Assembly (NCBI GenBank): GCA_946965045.2
Contig: OX337242.1
Location: forward strand, 2,480,001 to 2,544,000
Source: Epithemia pelagica
Lineage: Eukaryota > Protista > Bacillariophyta
Length of the DNA: 64,000 nucleotides
Direction of reading: 5' to 3'
Below the pieces are notes generated by a model. That model saw only the letters and a program-made list of their open reading frames with translations. It searched no databases and was not told the DNA's origin. Positions 37,581 through 64,000 of this stretch are shown here, in pieces (within the stretch, counting starts at the first letter, position 1; each line of letters starts with the position of its first letter). The position numbers were made by a program, and so were the translations under genes.

Positions 37581-37990
37581 CAGGGTTGTGAAGTACGCAC
37601 ACTAGCACCATCTACTTGCAGTCCATACTTTAAGTATGGTTCAGCCTGTACAATGTACTTGCTTACTACTACTTTAAGTACATCTAATTATTGTCCGTAT
37701 TTAATTTCATAAACTTATTCAGTTTTACGTCACTCTACATTAATGTATGTACTCTACTTTTGATTAGTACATGTTTCATTAGAGCTCTACTTACTTGACT
37801 TAGCCTAAGTACATCTACCAGACACATGTCAGGTACTTACATTACCGTAAGTACATTTGCACGATACCATTCACCTTCCTTACTTTCTACAAGTCAAGTA
37901 CCCTTATACATCACGTCTATGTACTTACAGACAATCATAAGTACATACTTTGAAGTACCCAAGTACATACTTTAAGTCGTTACTTTCCAC
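37581..37990. repeat. Subterminal repeat array (AAGTAC x8, GTACTT x3) of the putative hAT end
   Basis: Counted in ~400 bp of AT-rich non-coding DNA. Confidence 0.7.
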
Positions 37991-38363
37991 TTATCAGTAG
38001 ACTCGCCATTACAATAGCAGCATTCTGTGTATATTATTTTCAGCCAAAACGCTCAATCCCACCTCTTTGGCACTGCCCGCTCTCCAAAAAACGGGCTCGC
38101 GCTTTTAAGTATCTGCCTCACCCCAAAAACCTATTTCTCATGCTGACATTCTCTAGGACGAAAGGTATTTAGATATTATGTCACAATTTCTGTCCAAATT
38201 CGTATCCGGTTTCCACGCTCGGAACCACAACATCCATTCCATCCAAGCATGCTAATCGTTACCTCCAATGGCGAAGTGAAACAAGAATTGACAAACCCAA
38301 CAATCCAACCACGGCTCATCTGCCCATTGATATCGGAGAGAAAGAACTCACGGGTAACCAACG

Positions 38364-39254
38364 ATGTCAGACCGTCCACCTGAATATGAGTGGACTCTCG
38401 CCCTTCATCAGACTCCGCACTACGACGTCAACATCCAGGACAACCTGCGCATCGGATCGTTCGTGTACCTTTCTCACAAGACGAAAGGATCAAGGACACA
38501 CTACAATGTTGCTCGACTCGAAGAACGCCAACGTGATGAAGATGATGAAGCAATGGAATCAATTGTTGTCCGATGCCGTTTATTCTACCCCTTGTTTGAA
38601 TCACCACCAAACCAGACCAACCCAACCCCACCGTCGCACTCCTTTCGTCCAATCACCCATGGCCCTGGTAGCGAAAACACTGAACTATACGAATCAGCAG
38701 ATTTATGCTGGCTCAAGTTCATGAGCAAGACATCAGGACCTCAGTGCATCCATCCTTCTTTTGTTTTCACTCCGAAGGAACTGGAACACCCCAAGAATGC
38801 TTGGGCTGCAAGTATTTTCAACGTCTACATTGTTCGATATTGGGAGAACAAGGACTGCGACAAACGAGAACTGGTTCCCCTTCCTGATGATGCGCATATG
38901 GGTTTTATCAACGACCACCCGAAGTTCAAACCCAAACCCAATACATTTAAGCCACAGCGTTGCCTACATGAAGCCATTTGGAATGGCCTCTATACAATCA
39001 GAAAGAGCATTCACAAATTACTCAACAAACGCTCAGGACAGGGATCTGACAGAGAAGTGGTTTCCTTGAACATTGGTTGCGTTGCAATGGAGAGTATTCA
39101 GTACATCTCTCAAGTCGCCAACACATTGATTACCCTGAATACTCACCCCATTTCACTGTCCGAGTCCTTCTTTCATTTGGACTCTTCCCTATCACAATCA
39201 AAGGTACGAATTCTAATACACGCTCATGCATGTGAACCACTTCATTCCTCATAA
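38364..39254 (+). CDS. Cargo ORF with a BAH-like domain (probably one gene with 39294..39986)
   Basis: IGSFVYL..YNVARL..VRCRLF..ELYES..CIHPSFVF resembles the BAH beta-sandwich. A GTACG donor-like site at 39204 has no confirmed in-phase acceptor. Confidence 0.5.
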   Translation: MSDRPPEYEWTLALHQTPHYDVNIQDNLRIGSFVYLSHKTKGSRTHYNVARLEERQRDEDDEAMESIVVRCRLFYPLFESPPNQTNPTPPSHSFRPITHGPGSENTELYESADLCWLKFMSKTSGPQCIHPSFVFTPKELEHPKNAWAASIFNVYIVRYWENKDCDKRELVPLPDDAHMGFINDHPKFKPKPNTFKPQRCLHEAIWNGLYTIRKSIHKLLNKRSGQGSDREVVSLNIGCVAMESIQYISQVANTLITLNTHPISLSESFFHLDSSLSQSKVRILIHAHACEPLHSS

Positions 39255-39293
39255 CAACACTCACACCATTCCATTGTCTAAATCCTCCTTCCA

Positions 39294-39986
39294 TTGCAAC
39301 AAGTGAAAATTTCTTGCCATGGCGGTGTTCTTTGTTTCAAGACCCAATCCGAATTGAATGTCCTCCGCATGATATTGGGACCCAGTGCGACGTACGGATC
39401 GTCCGAACGACGTCCTAAACTCGACGATGGCAGGACAGGACTGGTGCTACGACGCGAGCAAAACCTCACAGTTGTTGCTGGTGCTCAAGATTCCAACCCC
39501 CACGAATCCGACGAAACATCGGAACCTCCATTCAAGCGCCGGATTGTGGACCAACGCGTCGATTTCATATTTTCACCTTATAATGTTCGTCTTACCATTT
39601 CGTACGAGCGTTATCAATATTCCGTGAGCCGTGATGGCAATCTCAAACACCTCCCTCTATGCCCCAATTTGGAAAAGATACTCCAAGGACAGTCTCAAAA
39701 CGATTCGGCAAGTGAAAGTGACTTCTCCCTGTCATCTATCGACACGAACTTAAAGCCACCTTCGTACACAAAGGCTGTGTCAAAGATCCACATTGGCGAT
39801 CAGTACATGTACAAGGGAGAAAGTGTCATGGAAGTCTCTTCCATCACCCGCCAGGAAACTGATGTCAAATTTGACTGTCGATGTGTTGGTGGAGTGGGGT
39901 TCAATCGTAAATCCCCAAAAGAGTCACTGGTTATCCAACGAACTGACGCTGAAGAGTTACTCAAAGACATCCTTTCATTTGCTTAA
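39294..39986 (+). CDS. Downstream part/exon of the BAH-like cargo gene, unknown domain
   Basis: 230-codon ORF on the same strand, 39 bp after the preceding ORF; its stop is 39 bp from the transposase stop. Confidence 0.5.
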   Translation: MQQVKISCHGGVLCFKTQSELNVLRMILGPSATYGSSERRPKLDDGRTGLVLRREQNLTVVAGAQDSNPHESDETSEPPFKRRIVDQRVDFIFSPYNVRLTISYERYQYSVSRDGNLKHLPLCPNLEKILQGQSQNDSASESDFSLSSIDTNLKPPSYTKAVSKIHIGDQYMYKGESVMEVSSITRQETDVKFDCRCVGGVGFNRKSPKESLVIQRTDAEELLKDILSFA

Positions 39987-40025
39987 CATTCCATTATCAG
40001 TAGTTTACATTCGATACTTATCATC

Positions 40026-43000
40026 CTATGTTTCACACTCATCTTCTGCAACTAGTTCGTCTTCATCATCATCATTCATAGTACCCAAAGACGCGTCGTC
40101 GTCCTCCTCGTCATCGTCACTGTCATCGTAGTAGTCCTCGTCATCGTCATCGTCACTATCCTCATCTTCCTCAGGGTCTACAACAAGTGATGTCCCATGT
40201 GTCATCTGCTCTACATCGTCAATTGGTGTCCATGTACCAGGTTCAAAAAAATCCCAGTCATCGAGATCTATAATATCTGCCAATTTTTCTACCGATTGTT
40301 CGTCTGATTTGTTTTCCTCTCTTGGCTGTTCCGCACCTCCATTGCTAGCTCCATTGTCCGTTGGTGACTGTCCAGCAGTAACAGTGACTTCCATTGATTG
40401 TCCGGCACCTCCATTCTCATCTCTTGACTGCTCAGCACCTCCATTCTCATTCGTCGACTGCTCAGCACCTCCATTCTCATTCGTCGACTGCTCAGCACCT
40501 CCATTCTCATCTCTTGACTGCTCAGCACCTCCATTCTCAATCGTCGACTGCTCAGCACCTCCATTCTCATCTCTTGACTGCCCGGCTCCTCCACTTTCAT
40601 TCCCTGTCTGTTGACCACCTCCATCGTCTTGTATACCCGGAATTCTGCGACAAAATTCCATTGTACCCTTATTCTTTGCAACCCAGGTTTTCCTTGCCAG
40701 CGCATTTTCCTCGCTGCAATTTGCATTACCTTCTGTTATATCACTGTATTCGTATCGACACATGAAAACCATGCGTCGTTGCAACCATCTCGCCATTGGT
40801 TCTAGTCTGGACCTCCTACCCTTTCCCCTATTTGTACTACCACCCCTTTGTGTTCTGGAAAAATAGAACGTCTTAAATAAACTATTGAATGCTGTAACAG
40901 TGTAGGTGAGTAACCATTTTCAACAAACAAGAGAACCTCTTTCGCTTTCGCAGGCTACTACTTACCTTCCCACCCCTGTTGAGCGTGGGATGACAGGTTG
41001 CGCCAGTGGATCAGGTATTCCATTACGTGACCACTACCTATCAAGTGTGCGTAGTTGGTTATCCCATTCTCACCACACAAATCCACCCAAGTTGCAAAAA
41101 ACTCATCCGCCTTGCGCTGATAGTCAAAAATCTCACTGTCTGTCATGTTGGTTTTCTTGTTAAGTCGTTCCATGGAAATGACATAGTCGGCTACACACTG
41201 CTTCCACTTGACTCGTTTCTCTGGGTTTGCGATACATATATCTACCAGTTCATCAAACTTGGGCAACATTCTTCGGATGCGGACGTTGTCCATAGTGATG
41301 GTTCCAAGTTTACGCTTCTTCTTCTCATACGGTGCTTTCCACTGCGTCGGCATATCACTCGTTCCCAATATGGACTGGTTCATACATTTTTGGACTCGCT
41401 TGATGAAGTGGTTACATCTCTTTATTTCTGAATTGTCATATTCTTCAGGCATCCAATCGAACTCTTTGACCTTTGCACTTGCCAGACCGTGTCGCAAACA
41501 CATGGTAAGAATCTTGATTCCCATGCGATTCTCCATATGGAGAATGCATGGGACCGTGTCCATCATATAGACAATTGCGGTAGCAGTCTTGGACTGCTTA
41601 TAATCATCTAACACCTTCTTTGCTTGGTAGTAAATCCACTCTTTGACATGGTGGGCCTTGAGTCGTCGTTGTCGTTGCTCTAGTGTACCATGCACATCTA
41701 GTTCTCTAACCACCAGATCATTGGTTATGAACCTCGCATATTCCAGACGCTTGGCAACATCGGCTTTGCCTAGATCAAAATGGATGGACTTGATGTTCCC
41801 CTTCTGAACTTTGGTTGGGTCCATCCTGGGGTCCTCTTGCATAATCAACTCGGAATCACCCCATATATCAGTTAGACTCTCGTAGATGCTAGGCATCTCC
41901 TTGACGAAGTGGTCCACTTCCTTTTGTAGACTGTTTACATGAGCCCTTGTACACATCTTGTGATGTCTACATACCCAGTTTGTTTTTCTGGAATGTCCTA
42001 GTTGCGAGCACAGGCTGCAGTCTTCGACACGTCCTGTGGGGAGATGGAGTTCTCCACTTCGTACAGTACATTTCGAACAAGGGAAGTTAACTTGTTGAGC
42101 GGCCCCACCACGCCCAAGTAGCTTCCACTCGCAACTCATATCGCAATTAGTGCATATTTTGAGCGGCCATACTCCGAATTTCGTGGGAAGTACTTTTACG
42201 GCAGCTTCACCGATCTCTTCGATCATGTTCCGAAAGATCGATCGCACTAAGCCCTTGCTCTCTGGACGACAAACACACACAACCGGAAAACAACTGTTAC
42301 GTGATTGGGCAAGAGGGTTGGACATGTCGTTGAACTTCAGCCCTCCCAGTGTATGGCTTAAGTTTTTAGTGAAAAGAGCGCCGTCCAAACGCTGTGCCAA
42401 CTGGATGGGCCGCCAACGAGCGTCTCCGTACAGACAATTGCCTGCCACTAATATTCCTGCCATAACATCGGCTGCCCGGAAGGCAAATCCTTCCGACCCA
42501 TCAGTCTTGTGCCGGAAAAGTCGGTAGGGGCAGAGAAGACTCCCAAACTTCTCGACTTCTTTGGCTACATCCTGGATACAAGAACTACTTGGGATAAGTG
42601 TGTGTGTATTAGCAACTCCATTGCTTTCCACTTGTCGTAGGACTTCAATGCCGCCAAGGTTTAGGACGCCACCTGCGAGATCCATTTTCCGTAGAATGTT
42701 AAACAGTGTGAAGACGTAATCGCGTACATATTTACGAAATACACCATATGCATTCTCGAACATGAGCCCATTGTGTATGGATTTGTCAAGGCACAGTTGT
42801 GCCACGTCTCGGAAGAATTCTCCTGCTGCTCTACTCGTGTCATCCATCCTACTGGTCCTTGATACGAGGATTTCTCGGATATGTGACACCAGTTTTTCAC
42901 AGTCCTTTATGTCGTAGCAAGAGGCGGGGAGATCAATCTCTTTGCTCGTCGCTTTTGTTTCCGCGTCTTTATCCCTCCAATACCGAAGGTCATCTGATCT

Positions 43001-44245
43001 ATTCTTCAGCTTTCTTCTACAATCGGTCAAATCGTCGGTTACTTTCTTCAGGGACTTGCGATAGTCAGACACAGCTTGATGTGCTTGTAGCAGATCCTGT
43101 TCCAAACAATGGATCTGATTGTGGAGACGTGTGATTTCTTCGTTGTCTTCTTGTGTCGAATCCATGTTGGCAGATTCGTCAGCGTTATCTAGAGTTTCAT
43201 TACTACTAAGGTACGTCCTATTTCTTGTCTCTTCAGTTGTTGATGAGTCGCCTTGCTCATCTCTGGACTGCTGACTCTCTGCATTTTCAAATGGGGGCAG
43301 GTCATCTAATTCTTCATTGTCGACATCAAATGACTCGGCTTCATCGACTGCATGGTCTCGAGAATCATGAGCATAAAAGCTGTAATGGCTGAGGGGGTCC
43401 TGGAAAAGAGGTAAGTTTAACAGAAACTGTGGAGTTTCTTTCTTGTTTGCAGCGTCGTTGTATTTGTCTTCATCAATCTCACTAATGAGGTCGTCATCGT
43501 CTTGAGGAACATTCCCTTGGGTTGGGTTCTTAGTTTCATCCTTGCCTTGTGGATGCTGGTACAGAATGCTTTCGAGAGTGGATGATGGAGGTGGAGGTTT
43601 GATCCTTGATCGTTTCCTCCTCTGTCGTTTCTTGCGTTTGCGAGTCGTTCTCAGGGACTTGTCGCCATTGCATGGTCGACAAAACAAATCAATTGGCGGT
43701 GGTTTTGGAGAGTTCTTCTTCTTTGGGTCGATGTATGTGGGATGCCAGAAATTTGTGTGCTTGGATCTACAGGTGTATCGACCGCCTATTGCCTTGCGGT
43801 TTATCTTGTGAGAAGGACGGAAACCAGACTCGTCGTCTGCCTTTTTGCATCGGCTACAGAAGGTGTATCCTGGGTAGCGTTCCTCGCGGTCTCTGCCATA
43901 AACAGAGCAGGGGACATGGTCTTCGTCCATAAAATCAAGAACAATCTGGGCAATCCGCTTTCTCTCAACAGAGTTTTTTTCACATGTGATATTCGATTCT
44001 TTGCGTCGGGTCCTTGTCTGTTTGTTGGGAGATGGAAGGAGCTTCTGGGCTTCCTCCGCTTCGCGTTTTGCCAGTTCGGCGAGAATTTCTTCTTCCGTCT
44101 TGAACCTGCTATCCTTGGCACCTCCATCGTTGGAATCTGATGCCGTCTCTTTTTCTCGAAGGCGACGAGACTTCCGAGAACCTTCAGTGGAAGCGGTGGG
44201 TTGCCTCTTCTTTGCGTAGTTCTTCGGGGGCTTCTGTTTTGGCAT
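40026..44245 (-). CDS. RAG1-core/Transib-like DDE transposase (~1380 aa); join(44245..40966,40891..40026)
   Basis: RLDGA (D), NCDMS (D), PCSKC, PCILH..R, NYAHLIGSGH and QQGWE|AFN (E) parallel RAG1 D600/D708/C727,C730/H937,H942/E962. A 74-nt GTAAGT..CAG intron fuses the two ORFs in frame. Confidence 0.82.
40405..40590. repeat. 30-bp tandem repeat (about 6 units) encoding NGGAEQS(R/T)(D/N/I)E in the transposase tail
   Basis: Period-30 units starting ccattctca at 40411, 40441, 40471, 40501, 40531 and 40561. Confidence 0.9.
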
Positions 44246-45013
44246 TCTACGAGGATAGGATAAGTAATAATACAAGTATTACTCGACTCAAATGGCGCTG
44301 TCCTCATTGTTTCATCGTCGACTTCTCTCGGTTGGAGTTCGTACTTCCGATGACTCAACTACGATTGAAAGGCGATTAGGTTGTTATATGTTATTCATTG
44401 ATGTATATAAATTAATGCTGTAGAGGTGTGCACGTGTGAGTGGGTGTGCTGTGCTCGCATTTTTTCCCCAAAATTTTGTTTGTGTGTGAAAGGTGCCAAT
44501 TGGACCCGTTGTATCTCGACGAATATTACCTACTTTTGTCATCGGACAGAAACGTAACATTGTGTTGTATTTAAAGTGTCTTGGACCGTTGGCCGATGAC
44601 AAAGTTAGTGGGTACTGCATTGGCAGTTTAGAACCAAAATCAGATGGTCGTTGGGAATGAAATTTTGGTGGTTATATTTAACAAAGGATGAGCCACTGTT
44701 TGGGTCATAGTTGGTGGGGGTTTCTGATATGACATCTTGGTGGATCTTGGACGTTGGGGTCTCGCCACGCGCGCACAATATGCACAGAATGCTGCTATTG
44801 AGAGGTCCGCAGAAACAAGGACAGCAGACAGACTAATCCTTAACCTTAACGTACCAACTCCACCGCCTGTCACACCTTTGTACACGCCTGTCACACCGTG
44901 TACACGCCTAAGTAATCGTCAAAGAAATAACCGTTCTCTTTCAAATCTGAAAGTCTTCAGATCGGCATTGGAAGATATTTCGCTATTGCATTCAATTCAT
45001 TGAGTATCTAGCC

Positions 45014-48000
45014 ATGGACGACAACAACGACGATGGAATGCTACATGATCAAATTCATCAACAGTTGGATCGATACTTCAACTCCTTAGAAACAGAATGG
45101 ACTTCTCCAATGACCTTTGCAATGCACACTGGTGATGATTGCATATGCAACCAAACAACAAGTTGCTTCGACATTTGTGCTTTCATTGGATGGGGCCCTC
45201 AAGCGGAGCACGTCAAAGGGAACTTCGCATATTTCTGTCAAACAGCATACCCTCCATGTACAAACCCAAGCAATATATTCGATGAAGATGGGTCCTTTTT
45301 GAAGCTAAAAGCTGATATCTCCAAAACTGCGATGTGTGGAGGATTTTCTATTGTCTCCAATGGTACATCACACAAAAAGGCGTTGGCCACTCGCAAGGCT
45401 TTCCCTAAAGGAAGTGAACCTCCGTACATGCAACGTACCTTCACTTGTGACCGCTACCGCCGCTATACCAACAAACGGAAGCGAGTATCTGTGGGAGACC
45501 CCAACATGGAACACCGTAAGGTTTCACTTCATAATGACAAGAAAGGCAACAGTAGGGGGGTTGATGGCAAAAAGGGACCAAGAAAAAACGTGACAACACG
45601 TGCATTACAAAATGAAGACACATGCTCCTTTCGCTTTGATATATTTGTCGATATGTATGGCTTTTATGTCAAGCGTAGTTCTGGATCTGTCACCCACTGT
45701 AATCATATGAAGCGGTTGCCTGCGGATATTCCAATAAAACTTCGTCATTTGACGTCAGAACAGAGACGGAGTACAGCTGAACTTGGTAAAGCCCTGACTC
45801 GTCCAGCTAATGGTCGAAACTTCTTCCATGCAAATCACGATCTCACACTGACTCCACAACAACTTCGGTATGCATTTCACAACTTTGCATCAGATTCAAA
45901 ATATCACTACAATGGTATTGAAGTAGGTGCTGGAGCAATTGTTGAATGGTTGCGATCAACACCAGACATAAGTTACTGCATATGGGGGGCAAAACCTCCT
46001 AATGTTGTAAACGCTCAGGTCCAGCGACAAGCTGGCTTAATCTTCAGTGAAAACCAGGTCGATTGTGGAGTGAGACATATATCAGACCTTACTAATTTTT
46101 GTCAAGAAGTTCTTCAAGAATACACTGCTGATATGGAAAAAGAAAGGCAACAGTAGGGGGGTTGATGGCAAAAAGGGACCAAGAAAAAACGTGACAACAC
46201 GTGCATTACAAAATGAAGACACATGCTCCTTTCGCTTTGATATATTTGTCGATATGTATGGCTTTTATGTCAAGCGTAGTTCTGGATCTGTCACCCACTG
46301 TAATCATATGAAGCGGTTGCCTGCGGATATCCAATAAAACTTCGTCATTTGACGTCAGAACAGAGACGGCGTACAGCTGAACTTGGTAAAGCCCTGACTC
46401 GTCCAGCTAATGGTCGAAACTTCTTCCATGCAAATCACGATCTCACACTGACTCCACAACAACTTCGGTATGCATTTCACAACTTTGCATCAGATTCAAA
46501 ATATCACTACAATGGTATTGAAGTAGGTGCTGGAGCAATTGTTGAATGGTTGCGATCAACACCAGACATAAGTTACTGCATATGGGGGGCAAAACCTCCT
46601 AATGTTGTAAACGCTCAGGTCCAGCGACAAGCTGGCTTAATCTTCAGTGAAAACCAGGTCGATTGTGGAGTGAGACATATATCAGACCTTACTAATTTTT
46701 GTCAAGAAGTTCTTCAAGAATACACTGCTGATATGGAAAATTTAGGTCTACAAGAAAACCAGCATTTCTTCATCGCTTGTGCATGGATCACCAACAAGGA
46801 AAAGAGAATGTTCCGCTTATTCCCTCATGTCCTCAAGATTGATGTTACAGAGGGAACAAACAAGGAGTCACGACCACTTCTTACAGTTTCTATCCGATCC
46901 ACCTTTGGGAAATATATTATAATTCTGCGGATGTTTCTACGTGATCAGCGTCAGGGAACTTTTCGATGGGTATTTTCCTTTGCCCTGCCAAAACTTCTTG
47001 GAGATCAATGGACATCCCAAATTCAAAGTGTCATAACCGATGGTGACTCACATGAGATTGTTGAACTTGAAGAGGCCTGTCGTCGTTACATGCCAAATTG
47101 CTTTCGTGTTCGTTGTGGGTGGCATATTATTCATAAGGGATGGTTACGACATTGCTCATTCGGGAATGCCATTGACTCAACGTACATTTGACAATACAAA
47201 CTGTTTTGCTACACTGTGAAACAGTGGTGTTACACGTTCATGTACCCAAGATATTGTGAAAATGAAAATGAGTTGGTGATATCAAAGTGCCTGCTCTTGG
47301 CCTACATTCATTCACGGCAGGTTCGAAAGTTCCTTCCAGACAACTTACGTTGGAACGTGCAAAACTTTTTGATTGGGTATGTTTTTTTTTCACGATCGAC
47401 AACTTGTGCACTATTACAGACAAAATCTTCGTCATTATGAAGAGTGCACTAACAGCAGTCACGAAGGTACAAACTGTGGTATCAAAGAGCACTCAGCTCC
47501 AGTTTTACCAGGTGGAACAGTCCAAGGCAATGCAGCGTTGTTGAAGTTTCAATCAGACATTCTAATCAATTCACAATTACGTCTCGCAGCAACGCGAGTC
47601 GAAGCTAAATCTGTTTGGATGAAGGAGAATCTCCTACCACTCAACGGAATGGTAACTGAATTGTGCCATGATTTAGTCCACAATGCATGGACGCGCCGTG
47701 ACAAATATGCAATTCGACGTGATAGATCATCACCATGGAACTGGCATGTCAAAGTGGTAGATACCAACTGTTTGGATACAGAGAAGAAACGCCTTCATCC
47801 AGTATGGCATCGTACAAGAACGGTAACATTGGATTCTTCCGGGCGCTTATTGTGTTCCTGCGGTACGTTTCAAAGGTGTGGTTACCCATGTTCGCATCAA
47901 GCCGCAGTACTGTGTTTTGAGTGCCGGGACTACCAAGGCTTCACCCATCATGATGTGAGTATTGTGTGGTGGAAGAAATACATTTTCTTTGGCTTTCGCA

Positions 48001-48800: not shown

Positions 48801-48842
48801 ATAAAGTAACAATTGATCAGTTAATAAATTTTATTTTACCTA
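48799..48842. terminator. Putative bidirectional polyadenylation region between the convergent MULE transposase and TET/JBP genes
   Basis: AATAAA twice on + and TTTATT (AATAAA on -) within 45 bp. Confidence 0.45.
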
Positions 48843-48845
48843 TAT

Positions 48846-52584: not shown

Positions 52585-52627
52585 TATATAGATTTTTACG
52601 GTACTTTGTACACTATCCTTCACAATT

Positions 52628-54500: not shown

Positions 54501-54875
54501 TTAAGCTTTGGAAGACGATTTTGTATTTCTACGACTATTTTGTGTTCGAGCGACTCCACCTGTTTCTTTTGCCTTTTCCATCAAAAGTTTTGCATGACAA
54601 GCCATGCAAAAGGCGTGATCACATGAATGATCATGTTTTACAGCGTTAGGGCAAAACATCACCGGATTCTTCGAAGTCACCTTAATACCACCCGGACCAC
54701 CGAATTTCTTGTTACATGTAGAGTTCATACACTTCCTGGGCCAAGTCTCATTATATGTGTAGTAGTCCAGTGTAAAGAAGGATCCAGTGTCTTGAACCAC
54801 GTAACAAGATAAGTTGTCATGTTCACAGGCTGCTTCCACCAATGGACTTGTATTCTGTTCAGTCCCCTGCTCCAT
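54501..54875 (-). CDS. Small Cys/His-rich zinc-finger-like protein (cargo; may be the last exon of a longer gene)
   Basis: CEH..CY..CxxxxC..FCxN..CxHxFCxxC, a RING/PHD-like ligand pattern. Confidence 0.5.
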   Translation of the reverse strand: MEQGTEQNTSPLVEAACEHDNLSCYVVQDTGSFFTLDYYTYNETWPRKCMNSTCNKKFGGPGGIKVTSKNPVMFCPNAVKHDHSCDHAFCMACHAKLLMEKAKETGGVARTQNSRRNTKSSSKA

Positions 54876-54915
54876 ACACCAACATTGTTAGAAGCTTCAT
54901 ACAATAATCCAGTAA

Positions 54916-55875
54916 TCAGAACCTTTCTCTTACCTTTTCCTCTCCAACTTTCTCCTTTTGACTGTTCTCAATTCTTGGACCCTGACGACCAATCACTTCC
55001 TTACTGATGCGACTTGAACTCCCTTTACGACCCTCATTTGTTCGTCGCAATGATTTCTCCTTTGACTGACTTTTCTCCTTGGATTGACTTGCTTTTGGTA
55101 GAGTAGCATTGCTACTCTCTCGATTACCTGAATCTCCTGGTAGAGTAGTACTCGCTTTTGGTAGAGTAGCAGTGCTACTCTCTCGATTACCTGAATCTCC
55201 TGGTAGAGCAGTACTTCCACTCGCCGGACTTGCTTTTGGTAGAGTAGCAGTGCTACTCTCTCGATTACCTGAATCTCCTGGTAGAGTAGTACTTGCTTTT
55301 GGTAGAGTAGCAGTGCTACTCTCTCGATTACCTGAATCTCCTGGTAGAGCAGTACTTCCACTCGCCGTATTGACCGCGTTGCATAGAGTAGTATTGCTAC
55401 TCGCCATATTGGAAAGAGTAACATTGCTACTCTTTGATGCCTTAGAAAGACAATCATTGTCTTCTCCCATAGAACTCCGTTGTCGTCCAGTATTTGTTTC
55501 ACTGGTTGCATTTACAATTCCCAAAATTGATCCTTCCGGGTGCAGTGTCTCTGGTCCATGCATGACGCCAATAGGAACCTGTGTCACCAAAGCGGAGGGC
55601 TGACAGTCATTATCTATGACTGTATCGATTGCTTGCTGCGTGCCTGGCGAAAACAAGGCAGGCGATTGAACATCATCCTGTCTTTGTTGAATTATATCAT
55701 CTGTATCATCCACATCAGTCATTTCCGTCTCGTTCTGCGCGCCCCCTTCACAGGTTTCGTTGTTTCTCGTCATCGTAGTGTTTCGTGCGCGTCGTTTCTG
55801 GTCTCCGTTGTCAGCAGCACCTCTGAATTTCTTAGCCAGTTGTTCTATGAAATCATCCTCAACATTTACTCCCAA
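54916..55875 (-). CDS. Low-complexity cargo ORF with 4 x 21-26-aa repeats (LPGDSGNRESSTATLPKAS)
   Basis: Minisatellite at ~55088-55366 with a 141-bp higher-order period, in frame. Confidence 0.45.
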   Translation of the reverse strand: MGVNVEDDFIEQLAKKFRGAADNGDQKRRARNTTMTRNNETCEGGAQNETEMTDVDDTDDIIQQRQDDVQSPALFSPGTQQAIDTVIDNDCQPSALVTQVPIGVMHGPETLHPEGSILGIVNATSETNTGRQRSSMGEDNDCLSKASKSSNVTLSNMASSNTTLCNAVNTASGSTALPGDSGNRESSTATLPKASTTLPGDSGNRESSTATLPKASPASGSTALPGDSGNRESSTATLPKASTTLPGDSGNRESSNATLPKASQSKEKSQSKEKSLRRTNEGRKGSSSRISKEVIGRQGPRIENSQKEKVGEEKVRERF

Positions 55876-55974
55876 CTCGTCTTATAGAAAGCTTCTCGCA
55901 TTTTCCAAAATATCCTTTATAGTCACAGACAACTGTTAGAAAAACTCATATGGATTCAATTGTGTAACACTGTT

Positions 55975-56847
55975 TCAGATACGTACCGATGACATTGTGG
56001 CAACATATTCTTCGAGAGGTTCTGCCTTTTTCTTCGATGTGACGAGATAGAACATCTCATTGCGATTGTACCAGAATTTCTTGTACTCCTTGTCATTGGA
56101 CTGTCCGGTTGTCAATGACAACGACCATCCCGCATGTTTCAACATAGGAATCATCAAACCACCCACAGTTTGAGACTTTGCCGATCTTCCAACCGCCGAA
56201 AACCCTCCTCGGTCATACTGACTAATTCTAGTCCGTTTGTTATTTTCGTTGTACTTGGGCTTGGTTTGCTTGAGTAAGTACATCTTATTCGTGAACAACC
56301 AGCTGTCAATGATCGAAGTGAGCCACGAGCGGTCTCGGTGAAATCGGTGTACCAGTTCATAAACGAGATTCATGTTCTCCTGGTTGAATTCCATCTTCAC
56401 CAAGACAGCTCTCATATCTGCCAACGTGACGGGCTTTGAGGTTTTACCAAGTAAGGTGAGATTCATTTCCTCGGCAATATCGCAAATCTTCTCTGTATAC
56501 TTTACCACAATAAACGCTCTCAGACTATCTCGTGTGTTTTGAATCTCTTCCAACATAGCGTCACCGTCTGGCACCGTTCGATCACTGAGTCCATCGGTAT
56601 TTCTATTCTTCCGATATTGCCATAAGAGTTCGGCGTCTTTGGCAGAATTTGGATTCTTGCCGGAAAGGGGATTGAAGTAATCCTTTGGATAAGGAAGAAA
56701 ATCCGCAGGATACAATCCGGTCTGCTGTACCACTTCTGTCCCCGGTCGAGATGTCGAGGCACCAATTAGGCTTGTGTACTCGATCTCAGGTCTACCATTG
56801 TCCACCACGCTTCTAATCCGTTCTAGATTTCTTTCGCGATCTGTCAT
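55975..56847 (-). CDS. Unknown 290-aa cargo protein (possibly spliced to the downstream ORFs; TnpA-like position)
   Basis: Intact ATG ORF, divergent from the transposase. Confidence 0.55.
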   Translation of the reverse strand: MTDRERNLERIRSVVDNGRPEIEYTSLIGASTSRPGTEVVQQTGLYPADFLPYPKDYFNPLSGKNPNSAKDAELLWQYRKNRNTDGLSDRTVPDGDAMLEEIQNTRDSLRAFIVVKYTEKICDIAEEMNLTLLGKTSKPVTLADMRAVLVKMEFNQENMNLVYELVHRFHRDRSWLTSIIDSWLFTNKMYLLKQTKPKYNENNKRTRISQYDRGGFSAVGRSAKSQTVGGLMIPMLKHAGWSLSLTTGQSNDKEYKKFWYNRNEMFYLVTSKKKAEPLEEYVATMSSVRI

Positions 56848-57297
56848 TTTGCTTTGCTGATCAGTAGGTGTCTACCGTTTTTCAGTGTTGTATCCAAAAT
56901 TTGGAGACCGTTCAAGAACGCAGGCATCGTCGCGCCTGCATCTAACTGCCGCCATATTCATTGGAATAAATGGTTTAGCCGGCGCACTATCGTGACTGAG
57001 TCGATAAATTTTTGAATAGTGACATGTTAGAGTCACTATGTAGACGATTAGCGTTACATAGGTCATTGTTTGTCAACGATTCGTGACTTGTTTATTCTAA
57101 AGGACTCCAATCCCCAGAAGTAACAGTCGATAGGGAATGAATTCCAAGATTAAGACAAGACCAAAAAGTTGGTCGCAGATATACTGGAAGGAGGAGGTGC
57201 ACCATGGCAACTTGACAAATCCGGTCTCGACGCTGGTTCATCAGATATAGGCGATTGTGTTGGACCTAAAGCCTTAAATTGTGTCCTCGACAGCAAT

Positions 57298-59985
57298 ATG
57301 ACTTCCGTTGAATCAATAATTTGTCATTTTCCATGTGTGAAATGCTCTGAACTCTGTCCACTAGCAGTACACCCAAACTCCCCGAGTGATTTTCATTTCG
57401 GATTGTACCATGGACGATGTTCTACTGCCACTTGTCTACAACAAGACCAACCATTTTTCATATGTTTCCCATGCCTGCAACTGCCACTGCCATTCAAAGG
57501 TCATCATAAGGGTTACATAGCAGAATGGCGTGCTGTACAACGCCATGCCCAATCAAAATTTCATCAAAAAGCCATGGAAAAATGGCGCGCATCGAATGCC
57601 CCTTCCCGATTTCAAGGCCATATCGAAACAACAGTGGATACAATGCAGAATGCGTCAGATACTCTACCATTGGACCCTACAGAGTGCTGTACAGAGGACA
57701 TAACTGACGATATACATACAAACGAAGATTTTGAACTCAAGTCTCTTGACCAATTATCGTCGCTGGGCTTTGCATCGGGTTCTAAATCACCCCAATTCAT
57801 TTGGGATAGTTTGAAAGGACATGGCAGCGGACTGAAATCATTGACAGCCCGCGCTTTTGCAGTCCCATTGGACAAAGTCACGTTACAAGAATCGGAATTT
57901 TCAATCTTGTTATCATCTCTTCTCATTGAGTTGACGGAACGTCAACGAGAGTTACTTGCCGAAATTTTGTTACTGGCTGGGAACAGTTCCAGTAAGGATT
58001 TATCCATATTTCAATCAACCAGGTTGCCTACGTCTACAGAAGATTTTGACAGGTTTTACCTTAAAGGCAAAGATAGCATCATGCAAAATCTTCCGATACC
58101 AATTTTGCAAAGTGCTGCCGATGGCTCCCATGCTCGAGTTTCTCTTCCAGATCTTATAGCAAACGAGTTGGGGAAGGCCCAGAGTTACGATGACCTCCAG
58201 TTATCAGCCGAACTACAAGTACAAGAGTCAGACCGGGAACCCAACGATGCCGCCACTCCTAACGGACGACGGCTTTTGTTATCATTACAACAAGATTCTA
58301 CCAATGACCCCCATAATCAATGTGTATTCAATCTCTGGCTTAGGGAGTGGCGAGACGACTTCGATCCTAACAACACGAAGTCGTCTCGCAACCAAGTCTG
58401 GGTGAATACGTTCACAATCGGGCCCGGTATTGACGCAACAAACGGAGCAACCACATACTTCATGGCACTTGGGGCGAAGGGCGACGATCATTCCGTTATT
58501 GAGAAATCATTGCTGCAAGAAATCCAGGGATTCAATTCTGCTGGTCACGATATATTCCACGGAGGATTGAAGAAGGTAGTCCGTGTTCGTCTCGGGAAAC
58601 TTGTGACTGGAGTGGACAGACCAGAACGAACGGCCATGTTCTCAGTTGGTGATCATAATGGTTCGTTTTCCTCATGTTGGGGCGTATCGACTCGGATTGA
58701 CAACAGATTGAAGGAAAATCGGCTTCCCTCCTGTTCCCGATGTAGAAAAAGACGCATGGTTGAATTGGGATTATGTCATCCAGTACGATCAGACAACAAT
58801 CGTTGTTCAGGACCACAATGTCAAAATTGGAACCTCTACCATCCGACACTCTTCTTTTCTGCACCAAAGAATTATCCAACTGTCTGTGATAGATCAACTG
58901 GTGCTCCAAAACCAGCACTTGGACGCCCAATATTCAATGTCAAACGGAATGCCGGTTCTCAAACATCTCAAAATGGAGGTACGACCGAGGAGAGAAGAAA
59001 CAATCCGACACGGACAAAGCGAAATCGCTCTGAGTCTCAAGATGAGGGACCCAAACTAAGATCTCATCCCATTTCAATACCATGGCTCAAAGATGCGGTA
59101 CTATTTGCCCATCATAACATGAAGACACCGTTGTCGTCAGTCTTACCTAATGGTAAGCGGTTTTGGAACAAGGCTCAAGCCAGTGCATATTTGCGTAGTT
59201 GTGGCTGTACCAACAAACTCATCGATTCAGTCTATGCTTCTGCCAAGAATGCTGATACCTTCCCTCCCTTTCCAGAGACATGGATAGACGAACAGGGCCT
59301 GGAACGGTGTCACTTCGCACCAATGCATATGATCTTCCTAGGGAATGTCAAAACCGTTCTAGAGATTCTATGTACATGGATGGGGTCGCATGAAACTTTG
59401 GCAACTTTTGGGAAACAGATGAATACTTATCTTACTCATGTCAAGATGTTGCGATGCACTCGATACTTTTCATCACAACCTTTGTCCACTTCAAGCTGGG
59501 GAACAGGGACATGGGTTAGTGAAAACTACCTGTTTGCATGTCGAATTCTCAAATTCGTCATGTTATTACCATGTTTCAAAAGTGATCGGCTGCATCGAAG
59601 AGAAGACTTTGCTTTGGAATATCAACAGGTTTCCAGATTCGTATGTGCTGCAAATGTAGCTATCAGTTGGATCATGACAAACCAGAAAGAGATTCATAGG
59701 TTACCAAACGTGGTCAAGGTGTTCTTGGATACTATGTTTGAAATGGATGTCCTAGTGGGGAGTGACGGTCAATCTGGATCTGAGTCTGTCGGGTCTGCAA
59801 AACTAAGTCATGTTATGAAGAGCAATTCACTCGGTCTACTCTTCATTTCTGAGTATCATGACGATATGGGACCTGCTTGCCTCCACTGGGAGGGGGGTTT
59901 CGAAGGAGAACGGAAGATACAGCAGGTTAAACCTGCTTTGTCCATCAAGCATTGTTTGACGAATGGTGTAGATGATATGTTCTAA
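57298..59985 (+). CDS. CMC/EnSpm-like DDE transposase with N-terminal Zn fingers
   Basis: EWRDDFDP (D), GVDRPER (DxPxR), PMHMIFLG, WEGGFEGE (E); CxxC and C2H2-like motifs upstream. Confidence 0.78.
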   Translation: MTSVESIICHFPCVKCSELCPLAVHPNSPSDFHFGLYHGRCSTATCLQQDQPFFICFPCLQLPLPFKGHHKGYIAEWRAVQRHAQSKFHQKAMEKWRASNAPSRFQGHIETTVDTMQNASDTLPLDPTECCTEDITDDIHTNEDFELKSLDQLSSLGFASGSKSPQFIWDSLKGHGSGLKSLTARAFAVPLDKVTLQESEFSILLSSLLIELTERQRELLAEILLLAGNSSSKDLSIFQSTRLPTSTEDFDRFYLKGKDSIMQNLPIPILQSAADGSHARVSLPDLIANELGKAQSYDDLQLSAELQVQESDREPNDAATPNGRRLLLSLQQDSTNDPHNQCVFNLWLREWRDDFDPNNTKSSRNQVWVNTFTIGPGIDATNGATTYFMALGAKGDDHSVIEKSLLQEIQGFNSAGHDIFHGGLKKVVRVRLGKLVTGVDRPERTAMFSVGDHNGSFSSCWGVSTRIDNRLKENRLPSCSRCRKRRMVELGLCHPVRSDNNRCSGPQCQNWNLYHPTLFFSAPKNYPTVCDRSTGAPKPALGRPIFNVKRNAGSQTSQNGGTTEERRNNPTRTKRNRSESQDEGPKLRSHPISIPWLKDAVLFAHHNMKTPLSSVLPNGKRFWNKAQASAYLRSCGCTNKLIDSVYASAKNADTFPPFPETWIDEQGLERCHFAPMHMIFLGNVKTVLEILCTWMGSHETLATFGKQMNTYLTHVKMLRCTRYFSSQPLSTSSWGTGTWVSENYLFACRILKFVMLLPCFKSDRLHRREDFALEYQQVSRFVCAANVAISWIMTNQKEIHRLPNVVKVFLDTMFEMDVLVGSDGQSGSESVGSAKLSHVMKSNSLGLLFISEYHDDMGPACLHWEGGFEGERKIQQVKPALSIKHCLTNGVDDMF

Positions 59986-60017
59986 TAGACATCCACTCGT
60001 TTCACTTGTATTATAAC

Positions 60018-61424
60018 TTAAGGTCCTAAGATAGGAGGAATCTGGATCATATTGTTCTGATACGCCCATACTTGTACTCGAGTGGAGAGTTTTTGTGTTT
60101 TCTTCAGATATCCATTGTCTCTAAGAAGTCCCAGTACGTTGGTAATTTGTCGAAAGTTGAAATTGGGAATCGCAATCACCTTCTCGTGGAAAAACTTGGA
60201 GCTCTTCCATTCTGTGTTTGGAGGAGAGTCAATCAGAGAGAGTATGACAGTGAATAGAGCCTGTCGGTCGGTTTCTATGTCGTCTTTCTTGATAAATGGC
60301 GTACTGGTAGTCCAGGTCAACACATCTGAAACAGTACGTTGGTTGACAATGTCCTTTTGCCATTTAGGTTGGGGAGTCGATCCAATACTATCAATAGGAG
60401 TATTGTTAATGAGGGGAAGCAGACGATTTTTTGTTCCTTGACGAGTGCCTTTGATGCGACGAGATATAAAAATGACAAGACCCTCTCCCCATTCATCCAT
60501 AGATCCTGTTTTGGGACGGATTTTCTGTAGTATCTTTTCTCGACAAAGGGGAATGTTGTCAAGATTATTGGCAACTTCTTTTATGTACCGATAGGGTTCG
60601 CTAACCATGATGGTCGTCGAAGCACCGCGTACATCCATATTTGCTTGTCTGTCAGACAGTACCGACCGAAAGGCTGTCCCACATAATATCATTCCACATT
60701 GGAACCACTTGCCCATGGTAATGAAGGCAACTCTCTCGATAAATGTCTTGGGCTTGGTGTTAGTCAGAACCATGGTGTTGCAGCGACCACCTGTTAAGAT
60801 CTCATCAACGATTATTCGGAACCCATGACGTTTTGACAGTGCTGAAATGGCCATAAGTGCCCGGGAACTTAATATGCTTCCATTGGAAGCTAGTATAAGT
60901 TCGAGGAATAATGTCGAAATAGGTTCGCATATACAGGATTGGTATATGCATCGTGCGTGTAACATCCTCATGCATTCGTCTTCATAGATGACCAGGGAGT
61001 CATCGTCCATTGTTCCCGGAATGTGGTAGGGTAGTGCAACGGTGTGTTTCCTTGCAACGGGAGATAGATGTTCTGTGTCGGGATGTGCAATGAATGAGGG
61101 ACCGTCGTTAATCTTGAACGTAGTAGTTGTCCAGGATTGTAGCGGGCCCTGGTCTCCGGCCACGTAGGAACCGCATGCTACCAAAACCGTGGAGGTGTTA
61201 CCTTCGCAAAGACTTGATATAGCGAAAAGGTTGGCATCAGAGCCGTTCGGGGTGAGCTTTTCAAAAGAGAAATTTCCTTGTGTGGTTTCAAGGACGCATT
61301 GTTTTAGTGCCTCTAGTGCTTGATAATCATCATCAATGAATGCAGTGTCGTATTTTCTTTTGTATGAAGATTGATCAATCAAAACAAATTGTTTTCCCCA
61401 ATTGTTGGCCAGGTCGTCTGACAT
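60018..61424 (-). CDS. Class-III PLP-dependent aminotransferase-like protein with an extra C-terminal helical/wHTH-like segment; CACTG cargo
   Basis: TPNGSDANLFA, FLELILASNG, IIVDEILTGGRC and FITMGKW (PLP-lysine position) follow the class-III motif order. Confidence 0.75.
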   Translation of the reverse strand: MSDDLANNWGKQFVLIDQSSYKRKYDTAFIDDDYQALEALKQCVLETTQGNFSFEKLTPNGSDANLFAISSLCEGNTSTVLVACGSYVAGDQGPLQSWTTTTFKINDGPSFIAHPDTEHLSPVARKHTVALPYHIPGTMDDDSLVIYEDECMRMLHARCIYQSCICEPISTLFLELILASNGSILSSRALMAISALSKRHGFRIIVDEILTGGRCNTMVLTNTKPKTFIERVAFITMGKWFQCGMILCGTAFRSVLSDRQANMDVRGASTTIMVSEPYRYIKEVANNLDNIPLCREKILQKIRPKTGSMDEWGEGLVIFISRRIKGTRQGTKNRLLPLINNTPIDSIGSTPQPKWQKDIVNQRTVSDVLTWTTSTPFIKKDDIETDRQALFTVILSLIDSPPNTEWKSSKFFHEKVIAIPNFNFRQITNVLGLLRDNGYLKKTQKLSTRVQVWAYQNNMIQIPPILGP

Positions 61425-62075
61425 ATTGGGATTGTTACAAGCGGAAAAGCGGACCGGTAATGAATATACCAAACAAAGGGTTGCAAAATGTGAGAAGAAC
61501 GCGATATTACGTAGTATGGAAAGTGTGAAAGTAAAATGGTTGTTGACCCGGCGTGATGTGTTCCAGTCTGGCTCGGCAAATTGCTAAAATTTCAAATGGA
61601 AGTATATAGAGAGGGGAACAAAAATGATAGAGTCCGGCATGGACGTTATGGTTCGTAAAGTCCAATCTTTGTATCATATTTTAAGTAGCAGTCTTGCTTG
61701 CACTATGTATCACCACGCGCGAGATTTCGGAACTTTGCGCCAAATTGGCGATAATGGAGTAAGTGGCATAGAGTATAAGGGGTGCTCTACGATATGTGAG
61801 AGATACCAGATTATATGACGGTTGGTGTGTGAATTTGAAATTCACAAGAGTTGGTTTGAAAGAAAGATTAATTACTACCCGGCGTATATTATTCTTCTAT
61901 GTAGGGAAAATGTAGGGGAATAATAGACCAATGGTTTGTATTGGGGTTTAAATGTAGAATTTGAAATTGTGCATTGTCCTGTTCTCAGGAACCCAAATTG
62001 CGCAAACCAGGATACTTTTTTGTTGCTTGGTTCCTCATATAAGAAGTCTCCAAAGAGAGAGGAAAAATATTGACA

Positions 62076-62693
62076 ATGGCATTGAATATCGATTACTTCA
62101 CTGGCAGGAATAAGGTGCCGGAGAAAATCCCACCGAAAATCGTTTACTTTTTGGCATTGGGCGAATCAGATCGCAAGAAGGGTTTTGAGTTTCTCCTGTC
62201 TTCTATGGTTACGGCGTTGGGGGATCCTCGGAAGGGAACTGACTTCGTTGAGTTAAAGAAGGACAAGGATCGAGTTTATGGATTCCCTACATTCATCTCT
62301 TCTTTATGTGGAGGGTTGGACAAGTCTGGGGATGGGTTATTGTTGGTACAACGTCAGTTTTACAACGTTGGGTTCAATCCGGGTGCGAAGGAGAATTTTC
62401 AACTTGGAAGTGACTTTCGTTGTCGTAGTGCATTCCTCATTGTTGTACGAGAGAAGGTGGTCGGCAAATTCCAAATTCTTCATCGCGAGATCTTCCACTT
62501 CGGTGACGACGGGTCAATGACTGTCAAGTATTGTGATAGCTGTGATCCTAAAGAGTATCCGAAGGAGATTTTCAAGATGCTGAATGTGCATGTGGAGGAT
62601 GCTTTTGTCGCGTCGACTTTGTACGGAATCAGTAAAGACAGTAAGGTTACCAACGATACGGTAGCAATCACGACGACTAATAATGGAATGTAG
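62076..62693 (+). CDS. Unknown 205-aa cargo protein
   Basis: Intact ORF inside the CACTG element, divergent from the aminotransferase gene. Confidence 0.5.
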   Translation: MALNIDYFTGRNKVPEKIPPKIVYFLALGESDRKKGFEFLLSSMVTALGDPRKGTDFVELKKDKDRVYGFPTFISSLCGGLDKSGDGLLLVQRQFYNVGFNPGAKENFQLGSDFRCRSAFLIVVREKVVGKFQILHREIFHFGDDGSMTVKYCDSCDPKEYPKEIFKMLNVHVEDAFVASTLYGISKDSKVTNDTVAITTTNNGM

Positions 62694-63149
62694 TGATTTA
62701 CGGTATACTATAGTTGATTGTTAAATCTTCTTCTCGTCGTTGTGTGTCTTGTGGACTCCTCTCTCGCTCTCTCTCTCTCGTCACAGCATGTCGACGACGA
62801 GACGAGAGAGATGTGAGAAAGACAACGCGAGAGATATGAGAGAGAAGAGAGAGAGAAAGAGAAAGATTTTGTACTATTCAGTATGATGGCGGTGTATAGT
62901 AAGTTTTATTTGGAATGTTGTGTTGTATAAACCAAATTCGGTATGGCATTGTTGGTTAGCCTTTACTCGGTATTTGGTTGACCAAATAAGTTGATAATCA
63001 GTATGATATGTTGAATATACAGCCTATTCAGTATGTAATGTTGAATAAAATTTAGATGTCGAAATGGAGGTTTATTCAGTACAAGAAAATCTGAATAAAA
63101 ATAAAATAGCGTTGAAAAGGTCTATTCAGTAGCAAAGTAGTGTGCAGTG

Positions 63150-64000
63150 AAGTCACGGTCCTGACAAGCCAACAGGAACCTGGATTTGTCAGCCGGTTTC
63201 CACTTTTTATAGTCGTTCGTGTAGGCTTCTGTTGGGTATTTGGCAATGACCTCGTTCCATTTAGTGTCAATGTCCCGCTTGCAAGCCCGACAAAAATCGC
63301 GCAAACTATCTTCACAAGTCTGTTTCAGCACTTTGGCTATTCGAGATTCTTCATCGGCAAGCGAGGCCTTTCCCGTTATACTCAACAATGCACGTTCATT
63401 GAGTTCTTGGGACTCCCTGAACGCACGGAATGGGTTGAATTTTTGGAACGGCATATTCGTTGTGGTGGAAGGATTGGTGTTTTGTTCAGGTCCAGACGTT
63501 GTGGTGGTCGAGTGAGACGTCGTAGTGCCCGTCATAGTGCCGGTAGTTTGTTGGGCTTGTTTTGATAACAAGGAACCGATTGTTGAATAAGCCTTGTTGC
63601 TGAACTTTTTGACCATGTCCTTCAAGAAAAGGTCCTTTACTCGATTGGCATCGTTTTGGTCATACACACCCAACGACTGGAAGAATTTCCCAAACATATT
63701 TGTTGTCAACGGGTGTGCCATCAAGGCCTTTTCAGAATCATCGTTGAGAGAGCCACCATCGTCTCTTTTGCGTCGACCTTCCACCAAAAGTGTCTTGAAT
63801 TCCGCGAGAATCCGACGGATAAGTTTGCGTGGTCCACTTTTCAAGTCCTTGAAAGACATTCCCACTCTTTCCAATTGGGGAATGGTTTTGTCCCCGTTCC
63901 ATCTCTTGTCTCTTGGTGTTGTAAGCGTCACAGGGAGACATCCAATTGCTTCTTTCGTAGTTTGCATCCGGTGTGTGTGAGCACGGGCAAGATAGATCTG
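63150..64000 (-). pseudogene. hAT transposase, upstream part (open to the window edge)
   Basis: Joins in frame to 53995 when the CACTG element and one TSD are removed; ALMAHPL motif. Confidence 0.75.

Follow-up and report, generated by a model that had tools for sequence, protein, structure and literature searches.

The window analysed in this study is a stretch of 64,000 nucleotides of the genome of the diatom Epithemia pelagica (GenBank assembly GCA_946965045.2, contig OX337242.1, positions 2,480,001 to 2,544,000 of the forward strand), and its part from position 37581 onward is occupied by a nest of transposons. Four of these are DNA transposons: a hAT element, a Mutator-like element (MULE), a CACTG-ended element and an inner element whose transposase has a predicted RAG1/Transib-type fold. 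Each of the four is a member of a multi-copy family in which one conserved gene, convergent with the transposase gene, lies inside the terminal inverted repeats (TIRs). The window corresponds, in reverse complement, to part of contig ctg1280l (431,725 bp) of ENA assembly ERZ21939226, and uninterrupted copies elsewhere in this assembly provided an empty site for each insertion; one comparison locus, L009, belongs to a second assembly (ERZ25042306). The window was extended to position 74,999 by means of locus L005.

An inverted-repeat search of the window returned three TIR pairs, one of 53 nt at 98% identity (44801-44853/50710-50762), one of 24 nt at 96% identity (38012/44800) and the CACTG pair (53998/63149). 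These pairs, together with the uninterrupted copies L004 and L006, bear out the arrangement proposed in a first-pass annotation of the sequence, namely a hAT element holding a MULE that itself holds a RAG1-like element, and the same hAT element holding a CACTG element. The hAT element was interrupted by the MULE, by the CACTG element and by a Copia-type retrotransposon, and the left TIR of the MULE was itself split by the 6.8-kb inner element. The hAT element extends from 37581 to window-equivalent position 72506, about 8.5 kb beyond the window end, and measures 6.7 kb without its insertions. Since the intact 6.7-kb hAT copy L004 aligned with the extended window in four collinear blocks (37581-38000, 50773-53997, 63149-66018 and 72309-72510; 93-98% identity across the MULE, CACTG and Copia sites), we concluded that the hAT element had received three insertions. 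The Copia-type element (about 6.3 kb with RVT_2 open reading frames (ORFs); L005:2692-8981, window-equivalent 66019-72308) is located in the 5' part of the hAT copy. This fifth nested element lies beyond the window and was thus outside the view of the first-pass annotation.

The insertion sites were then compared with their empty counterparts. The 53-nt TIR of the MULE extends 8 nt further (TCGCCATT) to 61 nt, and the left 8 nt were found at 38003-38010, separated from the rest of the left TIR by the inner element. They form part of a short plus-strand remnant (38001-38011) that ends in an extra A at 38011; both the right TIR and L006 read TCGCCATTAGAGG unbroken. The uninterrupted MULE copy L006 (98-99% identical) reads TTCGCCATTAGAGG over the inner-element site. 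The inner element was therefore inserted into the MULE TIR with a net gain of 1 nt, and not of 5 nt, which corresponds to a target-site duplication (TSD) of 0-1 bp. For the MULE, two empty sites read GTACCAT and the window reads AC[MULE]ATT, so that about 4 nt of the target were altered. It had also been proposed that excision of each insert restores its host sequence. The collinearity of L004 and L006 supports this, as does the hAT transposase ORF at the CACTG site, where the insertion breaks the frame just upstream of the dimerisation motif. The MULE insertion point, however, is located about 165 bp upstream of the start codon of the hAT glycosylase gene described below, outside any reading frame.

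The hAT element lies on the minus strand in three segments: a 3'-terminal segment (37581-38000; 94% identical to L004 15705-16124) with the 16-bp TIR at 37581-37596 and AAGTAC-rich subterminal repeats, a middle segment (50773-53997; 97.8% identical to L004 12479-15698), and a more 5' part of the transposase gene that runs off the window (63150-64000; 96% identical to L004 9586-12481), where the 625-aa ORF P0150 spans 63122-64999. The left TIR, CAGGGTTGTGAAGTAC at 37581, is matched perfectly over 16 bp by a partner outside the window on the same contig (window-equivalent 72491-72506), and both hAT copies, that of the window and L004, terminate in CAGGGTTGTGAAGTAC. The 8-bp TSD is GTCCATAT on both sides of L004; the window copy has CATAACAA and CATAACAT, matching in 7 of the 8 positions. 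Intact hAT copies encode a transposase of 1282-1283 aa and a convergent protein of 543 aa. The intact transposase P0148 matched PF05699 at 27.9 bits (cut-off 21.4). The 3' part of the transposase gene in the window (52918-53997, minus strand), which includes the dimerisation motif at about 53830-53990, contains one premature stop relative to the intact copies. Another hAT transposase (1074 aa; Dimer_Tnp_hAT and DUF659 domains), which belongs to a different hAT family, was observed at L007:17506-20730, close to where this locus holds its own RAG1-fold element.

The partner gene of the hAT element (50938-52584, plus strand; 543 aa in intact copies) matched human NTHL1 (7rds) at E=1.8e-17 and the nth model TIGR01083 at E=4e-17, with 62.5 bits against a cut-off of 211.7. 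The 606-aa ORF that starts at 50764 in the window is a read-through of this gene out of the MULE TIR. The catalytic Lys (GIGYKTA) and Asp (IPSDVHV) were kept and were invariant across homologues of 38% identity, and no four-Cys Fe-S cluster was found after the aligned HhH-GPD domain. The matches and the catalytic residues confirm, at the level of sequence comparison, the earlier assignment of the hAT partner as an HhH-GPD glycosylase, which we describe as a predicted endonuclease-III-like enzyme. Copies of the glycosylase gene were present on 4 further contigs. Locus L012 holds a second near-identical hAT copy without its first 311 bp, and a diverged hAT family (L012:1-5700) directly adjoins it, in which the transposase is 34% identical, a 605-aa glycosylase homologue is 38% identical and the layout is alike. 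No relatives of the glycosylase were found in the JGI metagenome scans. A bacterial promoter scan at the 5' end of the gene was set aside as irrelevant for a eukaryote.

The MULE body occupies 44801-50772 (plus strand; 98-99% identical to L006) and is bounded by the inner portion of the left TIR and by the right TIR. Its transposase gene (45014-48800, plus strand) is broken into three ORFs and shows the MULE and SWIM domains (PF10551 at 31.8 bits, PF21056 at 37.6 bits and SWIM at 27.2 bits; PF10551 reached 54.9 bits in L002). A tandem duplication of 601 bp in this gene (45539-46139/46140-46739, 98-100% identical) shifts the frame; copy L006, although 98% identical, has no such duplication. An 8-11 bp TSD is expected of the Mutator class; no TSD was found in the four MULE copies inspected or in the empty-site comparison. 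An entry "MULE-Diatoms" is given as "No TSD" in a published table (PMC6446971).

The MULE partner gene (48846-50114, minus strand), convergent with the transposase gene, encodes a 422-aa protein that we describe as a putative TET/JBP-fold 2-oxoglutarate-Fe(II) dioxygenase on the basis of its structural model and its HxD...H triad. Seven members with at least 90% identity were found on seven contigs. Two homologues of 43-46% identity (L002 and L003) were each found next to a MULE transposase and enclosed by TIRs, which measure 36 and 45 nt, and the 45-nt TIR of the diverged MULE starts with ATTCGCCATTA, as in the window MULE. A profile search with the dioxygenase family yielded 1142 representatives. 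H321, D323 and H374 were invariant in 52 homologues, and K393 was nearly invariant. Sequence and profile searches of the PDB with the protein or its family gave nothing relevant, and those with the inner-element transposase gave coiled-coil noise only and no RAG1/Transib match; since neither protein could be placed in this way, fold comparison was needed for both. The AlphaFold model of the 422-aa protein had a pLDDT (predicted local distance difference test score) of 88. In a Foldseek comparison with the PDB, its first 22 matches were all CcTet, CMD1, TET2 or NgTET1 (E=1e-9 to 2e-7, TM 0.35-0.6), and FTO and plant oxygenases ranked behind these TET/JBP enzymes. The assignment of the MULE cargo as TET/JBP-like, which had been made from the letters alone, is confirmed for the predicted fold and for the triad; it holds at the fold level only, and the Pfam threshold was missed. 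No relatives were found in the JGI metagenome scans. At the diverged locus L003 (12325-20865), the MULE transposase and the right TIR occur twice at a distance of about 6.9 kb, with the same flanks at both places, and this segmental duplication surrounds a helicase-like ORF (Herpes_ori_bp/AAA_30).

The inner element (38012-44800, minus strand) has 24-nt TIRs and CA...TG termini. A copy in L007 is 98-99% identical and differs by a 714-bp deletion. The bases flanking the copies are A/A in the window, G/G in L007 and T/A in L010. The transposase gene (40026-44245, minus strand) encodes an intact protein of 1381 aa after removal of a 74-nt GT..AG intron (40892-40965), which is positioned exactly at the conserved QQGWE motif. 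The paralogues P0021, P0024, P0026, P0029 and P0032 are intronless, and some others carry the intron. More than 30 paralogues were found in the assembly, together with many metagenomic relatives, none of which has a Pfam domain for the core. The sole named relative of any protein of the region is a hypothetical protein of Epithemia clementina (46% identical).

The core model of this transposase had a pLDDT of 90, and its first 49 PDB hits were all RAG1, BbRAGL or HzTransib (best E=1.3e-8). The description of the transposase as RAG1-like, also made in the first-pass annotation, thereby holds for the modelled fold. A C733-x2-C736 pair is located about 20 residues after a conserved Asp, followed by a TNYxH...H motif whose His pair has the spacing H-x5-H (H1077, H1083), and a conserved Glu is found in QQGWE near the C-terminus. 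These residues may correspond to those of RAG1. The acidic C-terminal tail contains tandem 30-bp coding units (40349-40624) that specify repeats of the GGAEQS type.

The partner gene of the inner element (38364-39986, plus strand; about 507 aa) is split in the window by a 99-nt spacer that includes a stop (39204-39302). The spacer begins with GT, and its sole AG acceptor is one base out of frame for a canonical intron. Elsewhere the gene was found as a single 499-aa ORF in L010 (45-49% identity); L011 has a version of 39% identity, and L007 has lost part of the gene. The protein had been called BAH-like, a label that sequence comparison neither supported nor excluded: no Pfam match was found at E<=10 and no relevant PDB match with a five-sequence profile. 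Two RAG1-fold elements are adjacent at L011:8001-19066, the first of which is followed by a 447-aa Gly-rich ORF and has no recognisable partner gene.

The CACTG element (53998-63149, plus strand; 9.15 kb, six ORFs) has the termini CACTGCACA in the window and in its diverged copy L008 (8234-18308), and TTATTCAG subterminal repeats near both ends. The TSD was 2 bp in two independent insertions, AA in the window and CG/CG in L008. The same six genes were found in L008 of the same genome at 30-71% identity, and four of the six in L009 of the other assembly. The assignment of this element to a class rests on its termini, its TSD and a reading of motifs. From position, size and motifs we infer that the 938-aa protein (57169-59985, plus strand; 54% identical in L008 and 39% in L009) is its presumed transposase. 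The 938-aa protein had no Pfam match even at E=10, including EnSpm and Transposase_21, and the comparison of its family, a profile of only three sequences, with the RAG1-fold family by hhalign gave a probability of 2% and no similarity. The smaller ORFs are a 124-aa Cys/His-rich, zinc-finger-like ORF (54501-54875, minus strand; 55-56% identical in L008 and 40% in L009), two ORFs of 319 aa and 290 aa (54916-56847, minus strand), and a 207-aa ORF (62070-62693, plus strand; 71% identical in L008). The zinc-finger ORF that had been noted earlier is thus present and conserved, its invariant Cys/His pattern being established by comparison with L008 only. The 319-aa ORF contains 63-bp coding repeat units at 55086-55430, and the 290-aa ORF shares 65% identity with its L008 counterpart and 36% with that of L009. 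None of the small ORFs matched Pfam at relaxed thresholds.

Convergent with the 938-aa gene lies the gene of a 468-aa protein (60018-61424, minus strand). Its family profile matched 6jix, a class-III aminotransferase, at E=6.9e-5, which agrees with the proposal that this cargo is a pyridoxal phosphate (PLP) aminotransferase-like enzyme; the PF00202 scores of 15-27 bits, however, were below the threshold of 30.5. We found 138 homologues, some with precomputed PF00202 hits, in clusters of up to 273 near-identical members. E175, D207 and K239 were invariant in the family, and HMMER places K239 five residues off the template Lys. The profile match weakly confirms the protein as a putative, divergent class-III aminotransferase-like protein of the PLP fold, below curated thresholds. 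It is worth noting that the 273 near-identical members, the cluster of P0311, are located in the other large assembly (L009, ERZ25042306), which implies, as judged from the sequences, a massive recent amplification of that element family in that assembly.

The second genes were found beside the same transposase in diverged copies at 33-70% amino-acid identity. The hAT transposase and the glycosylase occur together in L004, in L012 and in the diverged hAT family; the MULE transposase is accompanied by the dioxygenase in L006, L002 and L003, with TIRs of 36-45 nt around the pair; L010, L011 and L007 hold the RAG1-fold element together with its partner gene; and the CACTG gene set recurs in L008 and partly in L009. 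The same cargo between the same TIRs in independent copies, which the first-pass annotation had set against the case of single-copy host genes, was thus observed. The dN/dS ratio (nonsynonymous to synonymous substitution rates) was 0.21-0.73 for the glycosylase and 0.21-0.31 for the hAT transposase; for the dioxygenase it was 0.37 between near copies and 0.17-0.19 between distant ones. Between the diverged families dS was saturated. Ratios of 0.17-0.73 indicate that the cargo genes are under purifying selection.

The second genes might instead be ordinary host genes or decaying Pack-type captures, which would lie between TIRs only because elements are nested around them. The nesting is dense here, many ORFs are unannotated, and the inner element has an interrupted partner gene in the window and a partly deleted one in L007. 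On the other hand, independent insertions that differ in their flanks and TSDs have the same gene at the same place, most copies have full-length ORFs, catalytic residues are invariant at 33-46% identity, dN/dS is below 1, and families have up to 273 near-identical members. We consider this explanation very improbable, and trapped host genes were rejected on recurrence and selection. The cargo genes are stable, long-standing genes of their families, neither trapped host genes nor recent Pack-type captures, and the associations between cargo and transposon are old. An independent capture of the cargo by each element is plausible. Still less probable, in our judgement, is an assembly artefact, a chimeric contig that joins repeats. 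The related loci, apart from L009, all come from one ENA assembly with hifiasm-style contig names, and the perfect 601-bp tandem duplication could be an assembly error. All junctions, however, fall exactly at TIR ends, the hAT (8 bp) and CACTG (2 bp) junctions have target duplications typical of their classes, the flanks are collinear with intact copies at 93-98% and hence are not identical sequence, and the contig is 432 kb long.

The region upstream of the nest was also inspected. Three copies of a repeat of about 1.4 kb, 83-100% identical, were found at 12895-14323, 16492-17920 and 26086-27743, surrounding a Copia-type RVT_2 ORF of 1134 aa (18541-21945). These repeats are probably long terminal repeats, and the whole is probably another retroelement that precedes the nest. 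At 28097-28825, a GAA-rich microsatellite is enclosed by an inverted repeat of 57 nt (95%), an arrangement that resembles a small miniature inverted-repeat transposable element. The ORF at 35719-36609, just to the left of the hAT end, has an HSF-type DNA-binding domain and is probably a host gene.

The elements were compared with known systems. TET/JBP genes are carried by fungal DNA transposons of the KDZ, Plavaka, hAT7, EnSpm, ESTA, Harbinger, IS3EU and Helitron types (Kojima 2025, PMC12730594, and earlier studies cited there). The window MULE resembles these in that a dioxygenase gene lies beside the transposase gene within a cut-and-paste element, that the carriers are multi-copy and that several transposon lineages are present in one genome; structurally, the window dioxygenase is closest to CcTet of Coprinopsis, a genus with expanded TET/JBP genes according to PMC12730594. 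It differs in its non-fungal host and in its carrier, since MULEs do not appear in the list of 11 lineages of that study; moreover, the window protein is too divergent for the Pfam Tet_JBP threshold, and the other three elements carry genes other than TET. A second protein thought to change the epigenetic state of its own element is also encoded by other DNA transposons, MULEs included; PMC12730594 cites VANDAL MULEs with VANC and Phytophthora Harbinger/MuDR elements with SET methyltransferase genes. VANC is not an enzyme but a sequence-specific factor, and the targets of SET are histones, whereas the candidates here would be DNA-base enzymes; homology to either is not to be expected. The hAT glycosylase shares the HhH-GPD domain with endonuclease III/NTHL1 and with the plant 5-methylcytosine glycosylases DME/ROS1, and also the lysine of the HhH motif (GIGYK) and the GPD-loop Asp (SDVHV). 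Unlike them it has no C-terminal [4Fe-4S] Cys cluster, has an extra N-terminal region of about 340 aa and is encoded by a hAT element.

The two remaining elements were compared with the CMCT clade, a broad group that holds RAG1-fold and CACTA-type elements, ESTA included, and that is united by CA..TG termini, TSDs of 2-5 bp and the motifs C(2)C and H(3-4)H (PMC12730594). Because RAG1-fold and CACTA-type elements share this clade, the earlier statement that four unrelated superfamilies are present was overstated. The inner element is similar to Transib, RAG1 and CMCT members in its RAG1-like fold, its CxxC pair and its 5'-CA...TG-3' termini. Its TSD of 0-1 bp is different from that of Transib (5 bp) or CMCT elements (2-5 bp), and its transposase differs from Transib/RAG1 in having no sequence-level match, the H-x5-H spacing, a length of 1381 aa, a repeat-rich acidic tail and a conserved partner gene. 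The CACTG element has the CACTG termini, the 2-bp TSD, the subterminal repeats and the large multi-gene body of CACTA/EnSpm-Mirage elements; unlike those, its 938-aa protein has no EnSpm/CMC transposase match and an aminotransferase-like gene is aboard. We found no record in the open-access literature of a transposon-borne HhH-GPD glycosylase, of a transposon-borne aminotransferase or of TET-carrying transposons outside fungi.

The set of cargo genes suggests, by analogy, that the elements may act on their own DNA marks. The locus is a pile-up of five elements, four with long-standing cargo, and the reading of this pile-up that we favour, at a probability of roughly 0.55, is that the dioxygenase and the glycosylase act on the marks of their own elements to delay silencing. 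The outer 6.7-kb hAT element was struck three times, by the MULE, by the CACTG-ended element and by the Copia element, and the left TIR of the MULE was later struck by the RAG1/Transib-fold element. The dioxygenase would most likely oxidise 5-methylcytosine (or thymine) in DNA, and the glycosylase, with the Lys and Asp of bifunctional glycosylase/lyases, would most likely excise a modified base. If each acts preferentially on or near the DNA of its own element, methylation-based silencing would be delayed, as has been proposed for fungal TET-carrying transposons. We infer such an anti-silencing role from the enzyme classes and from the fungal precedent (PMC12730594). The broader claim that all of the cargo is DNA-modifying or chromatin-reading was retained in part: the glycosylase and the TET-like protein fit it by enzyme class, but the aminotransferase-like enzyme is not evidently DNA-modifying and no sequence match was found for the "BAH-like reader".

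Several facts weigh against the favoured reading. The TET-like protein is under the Pfam thresholds (PF20515 at E=0.015 and 15.8 bits versus 27 for the window protein; PF12851 in 7 of the 52 homologues, best E=0.0023, sub-threshold), and the TM-scores of its model to TET structures are only 0.4-0.6. The glycosylase is without the Fe-S cysteines of Nth and DME/ROS1 and scores 62 versus 212 bits on the nth model. The window copies are damaged, the hAT element being split three times, its transposase gene carrying a stop and the MULE transposase being frameshifted by the 601-bp duplication; the locus is therefore a graveyard rather than an active unit. Finally, transposition or repair might be what the accessory proteins serve.

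In this last explanation, the second genes would encode accessory factors for transposition, much as the second ORFs of CACTA or MuDR elements do, that function in end recognition, gap repair or target choice and not on epigenetic marks; a glycosylase/lyase, for example, might process DNA ends or lesions at the excision site. The strict linkage and the convergent orientation with the transposase across diverged families are consistent with such a role, as are the six conserved ORFs of the CACTG element, which resembles multi-gene CACTA elements, and the 500-aa and aminotransferase-like proteins, which have no evident tie to DNA marks. The TET/JBP-fold and Nth-like proteins, however, belong to base-modifying and base-excising enzyme classes and their catalytic motifs are intact, and we know of no cut-and-paste transposition mechanism that needs such enzymes. 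The hAT and MULE transposases are sufficient by themselves in known systems. We regard an accessory role as possible but doubtful.

A further extension of the favoured reading is that several transposon classes each keep their own DNA-base enzyme against silencing. The TET-like protein of the MULE and the Nth-type protein of the hAT element would then constitute an oxidise-then-excise demethylation pathway, and the aminotransferase-like protein would perhaps contribute further base chemistry. We put this forward only tentatively and consider it rather unlikely. If it is true, the locus would provide the first transposon-borne Nth-type glycosylase, a MULE-borne TET-like dioxygenase and a demethylation pathway supplied wholly by mobile elements.

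Transposon-encoded TET proteins have so far been described only in fungi, as far as the open-access literature is concerned; the putative dioxygenase gene reported here is located in a different eukaryotic lineage and has a MULE as its carrier. Two enzyme classes for which no transposon record was found, an endonuclease-III-like glycosylase in a hAT element and a class-III aminotransferase-like protein in a CACTG element, would be added to the cargo of DNA transposons. The RAG1-fold family, which is abundant, produces nearly no TSD and contains an intron, would widen the known range of RAG1/Transib-type elements. If the enzymes act on 5-methylcytosine, they would offer compact new DNA-modifying enzymes and a model, open to direct testing, of the means by which DNA transposons in algae escape silencing by methylation.

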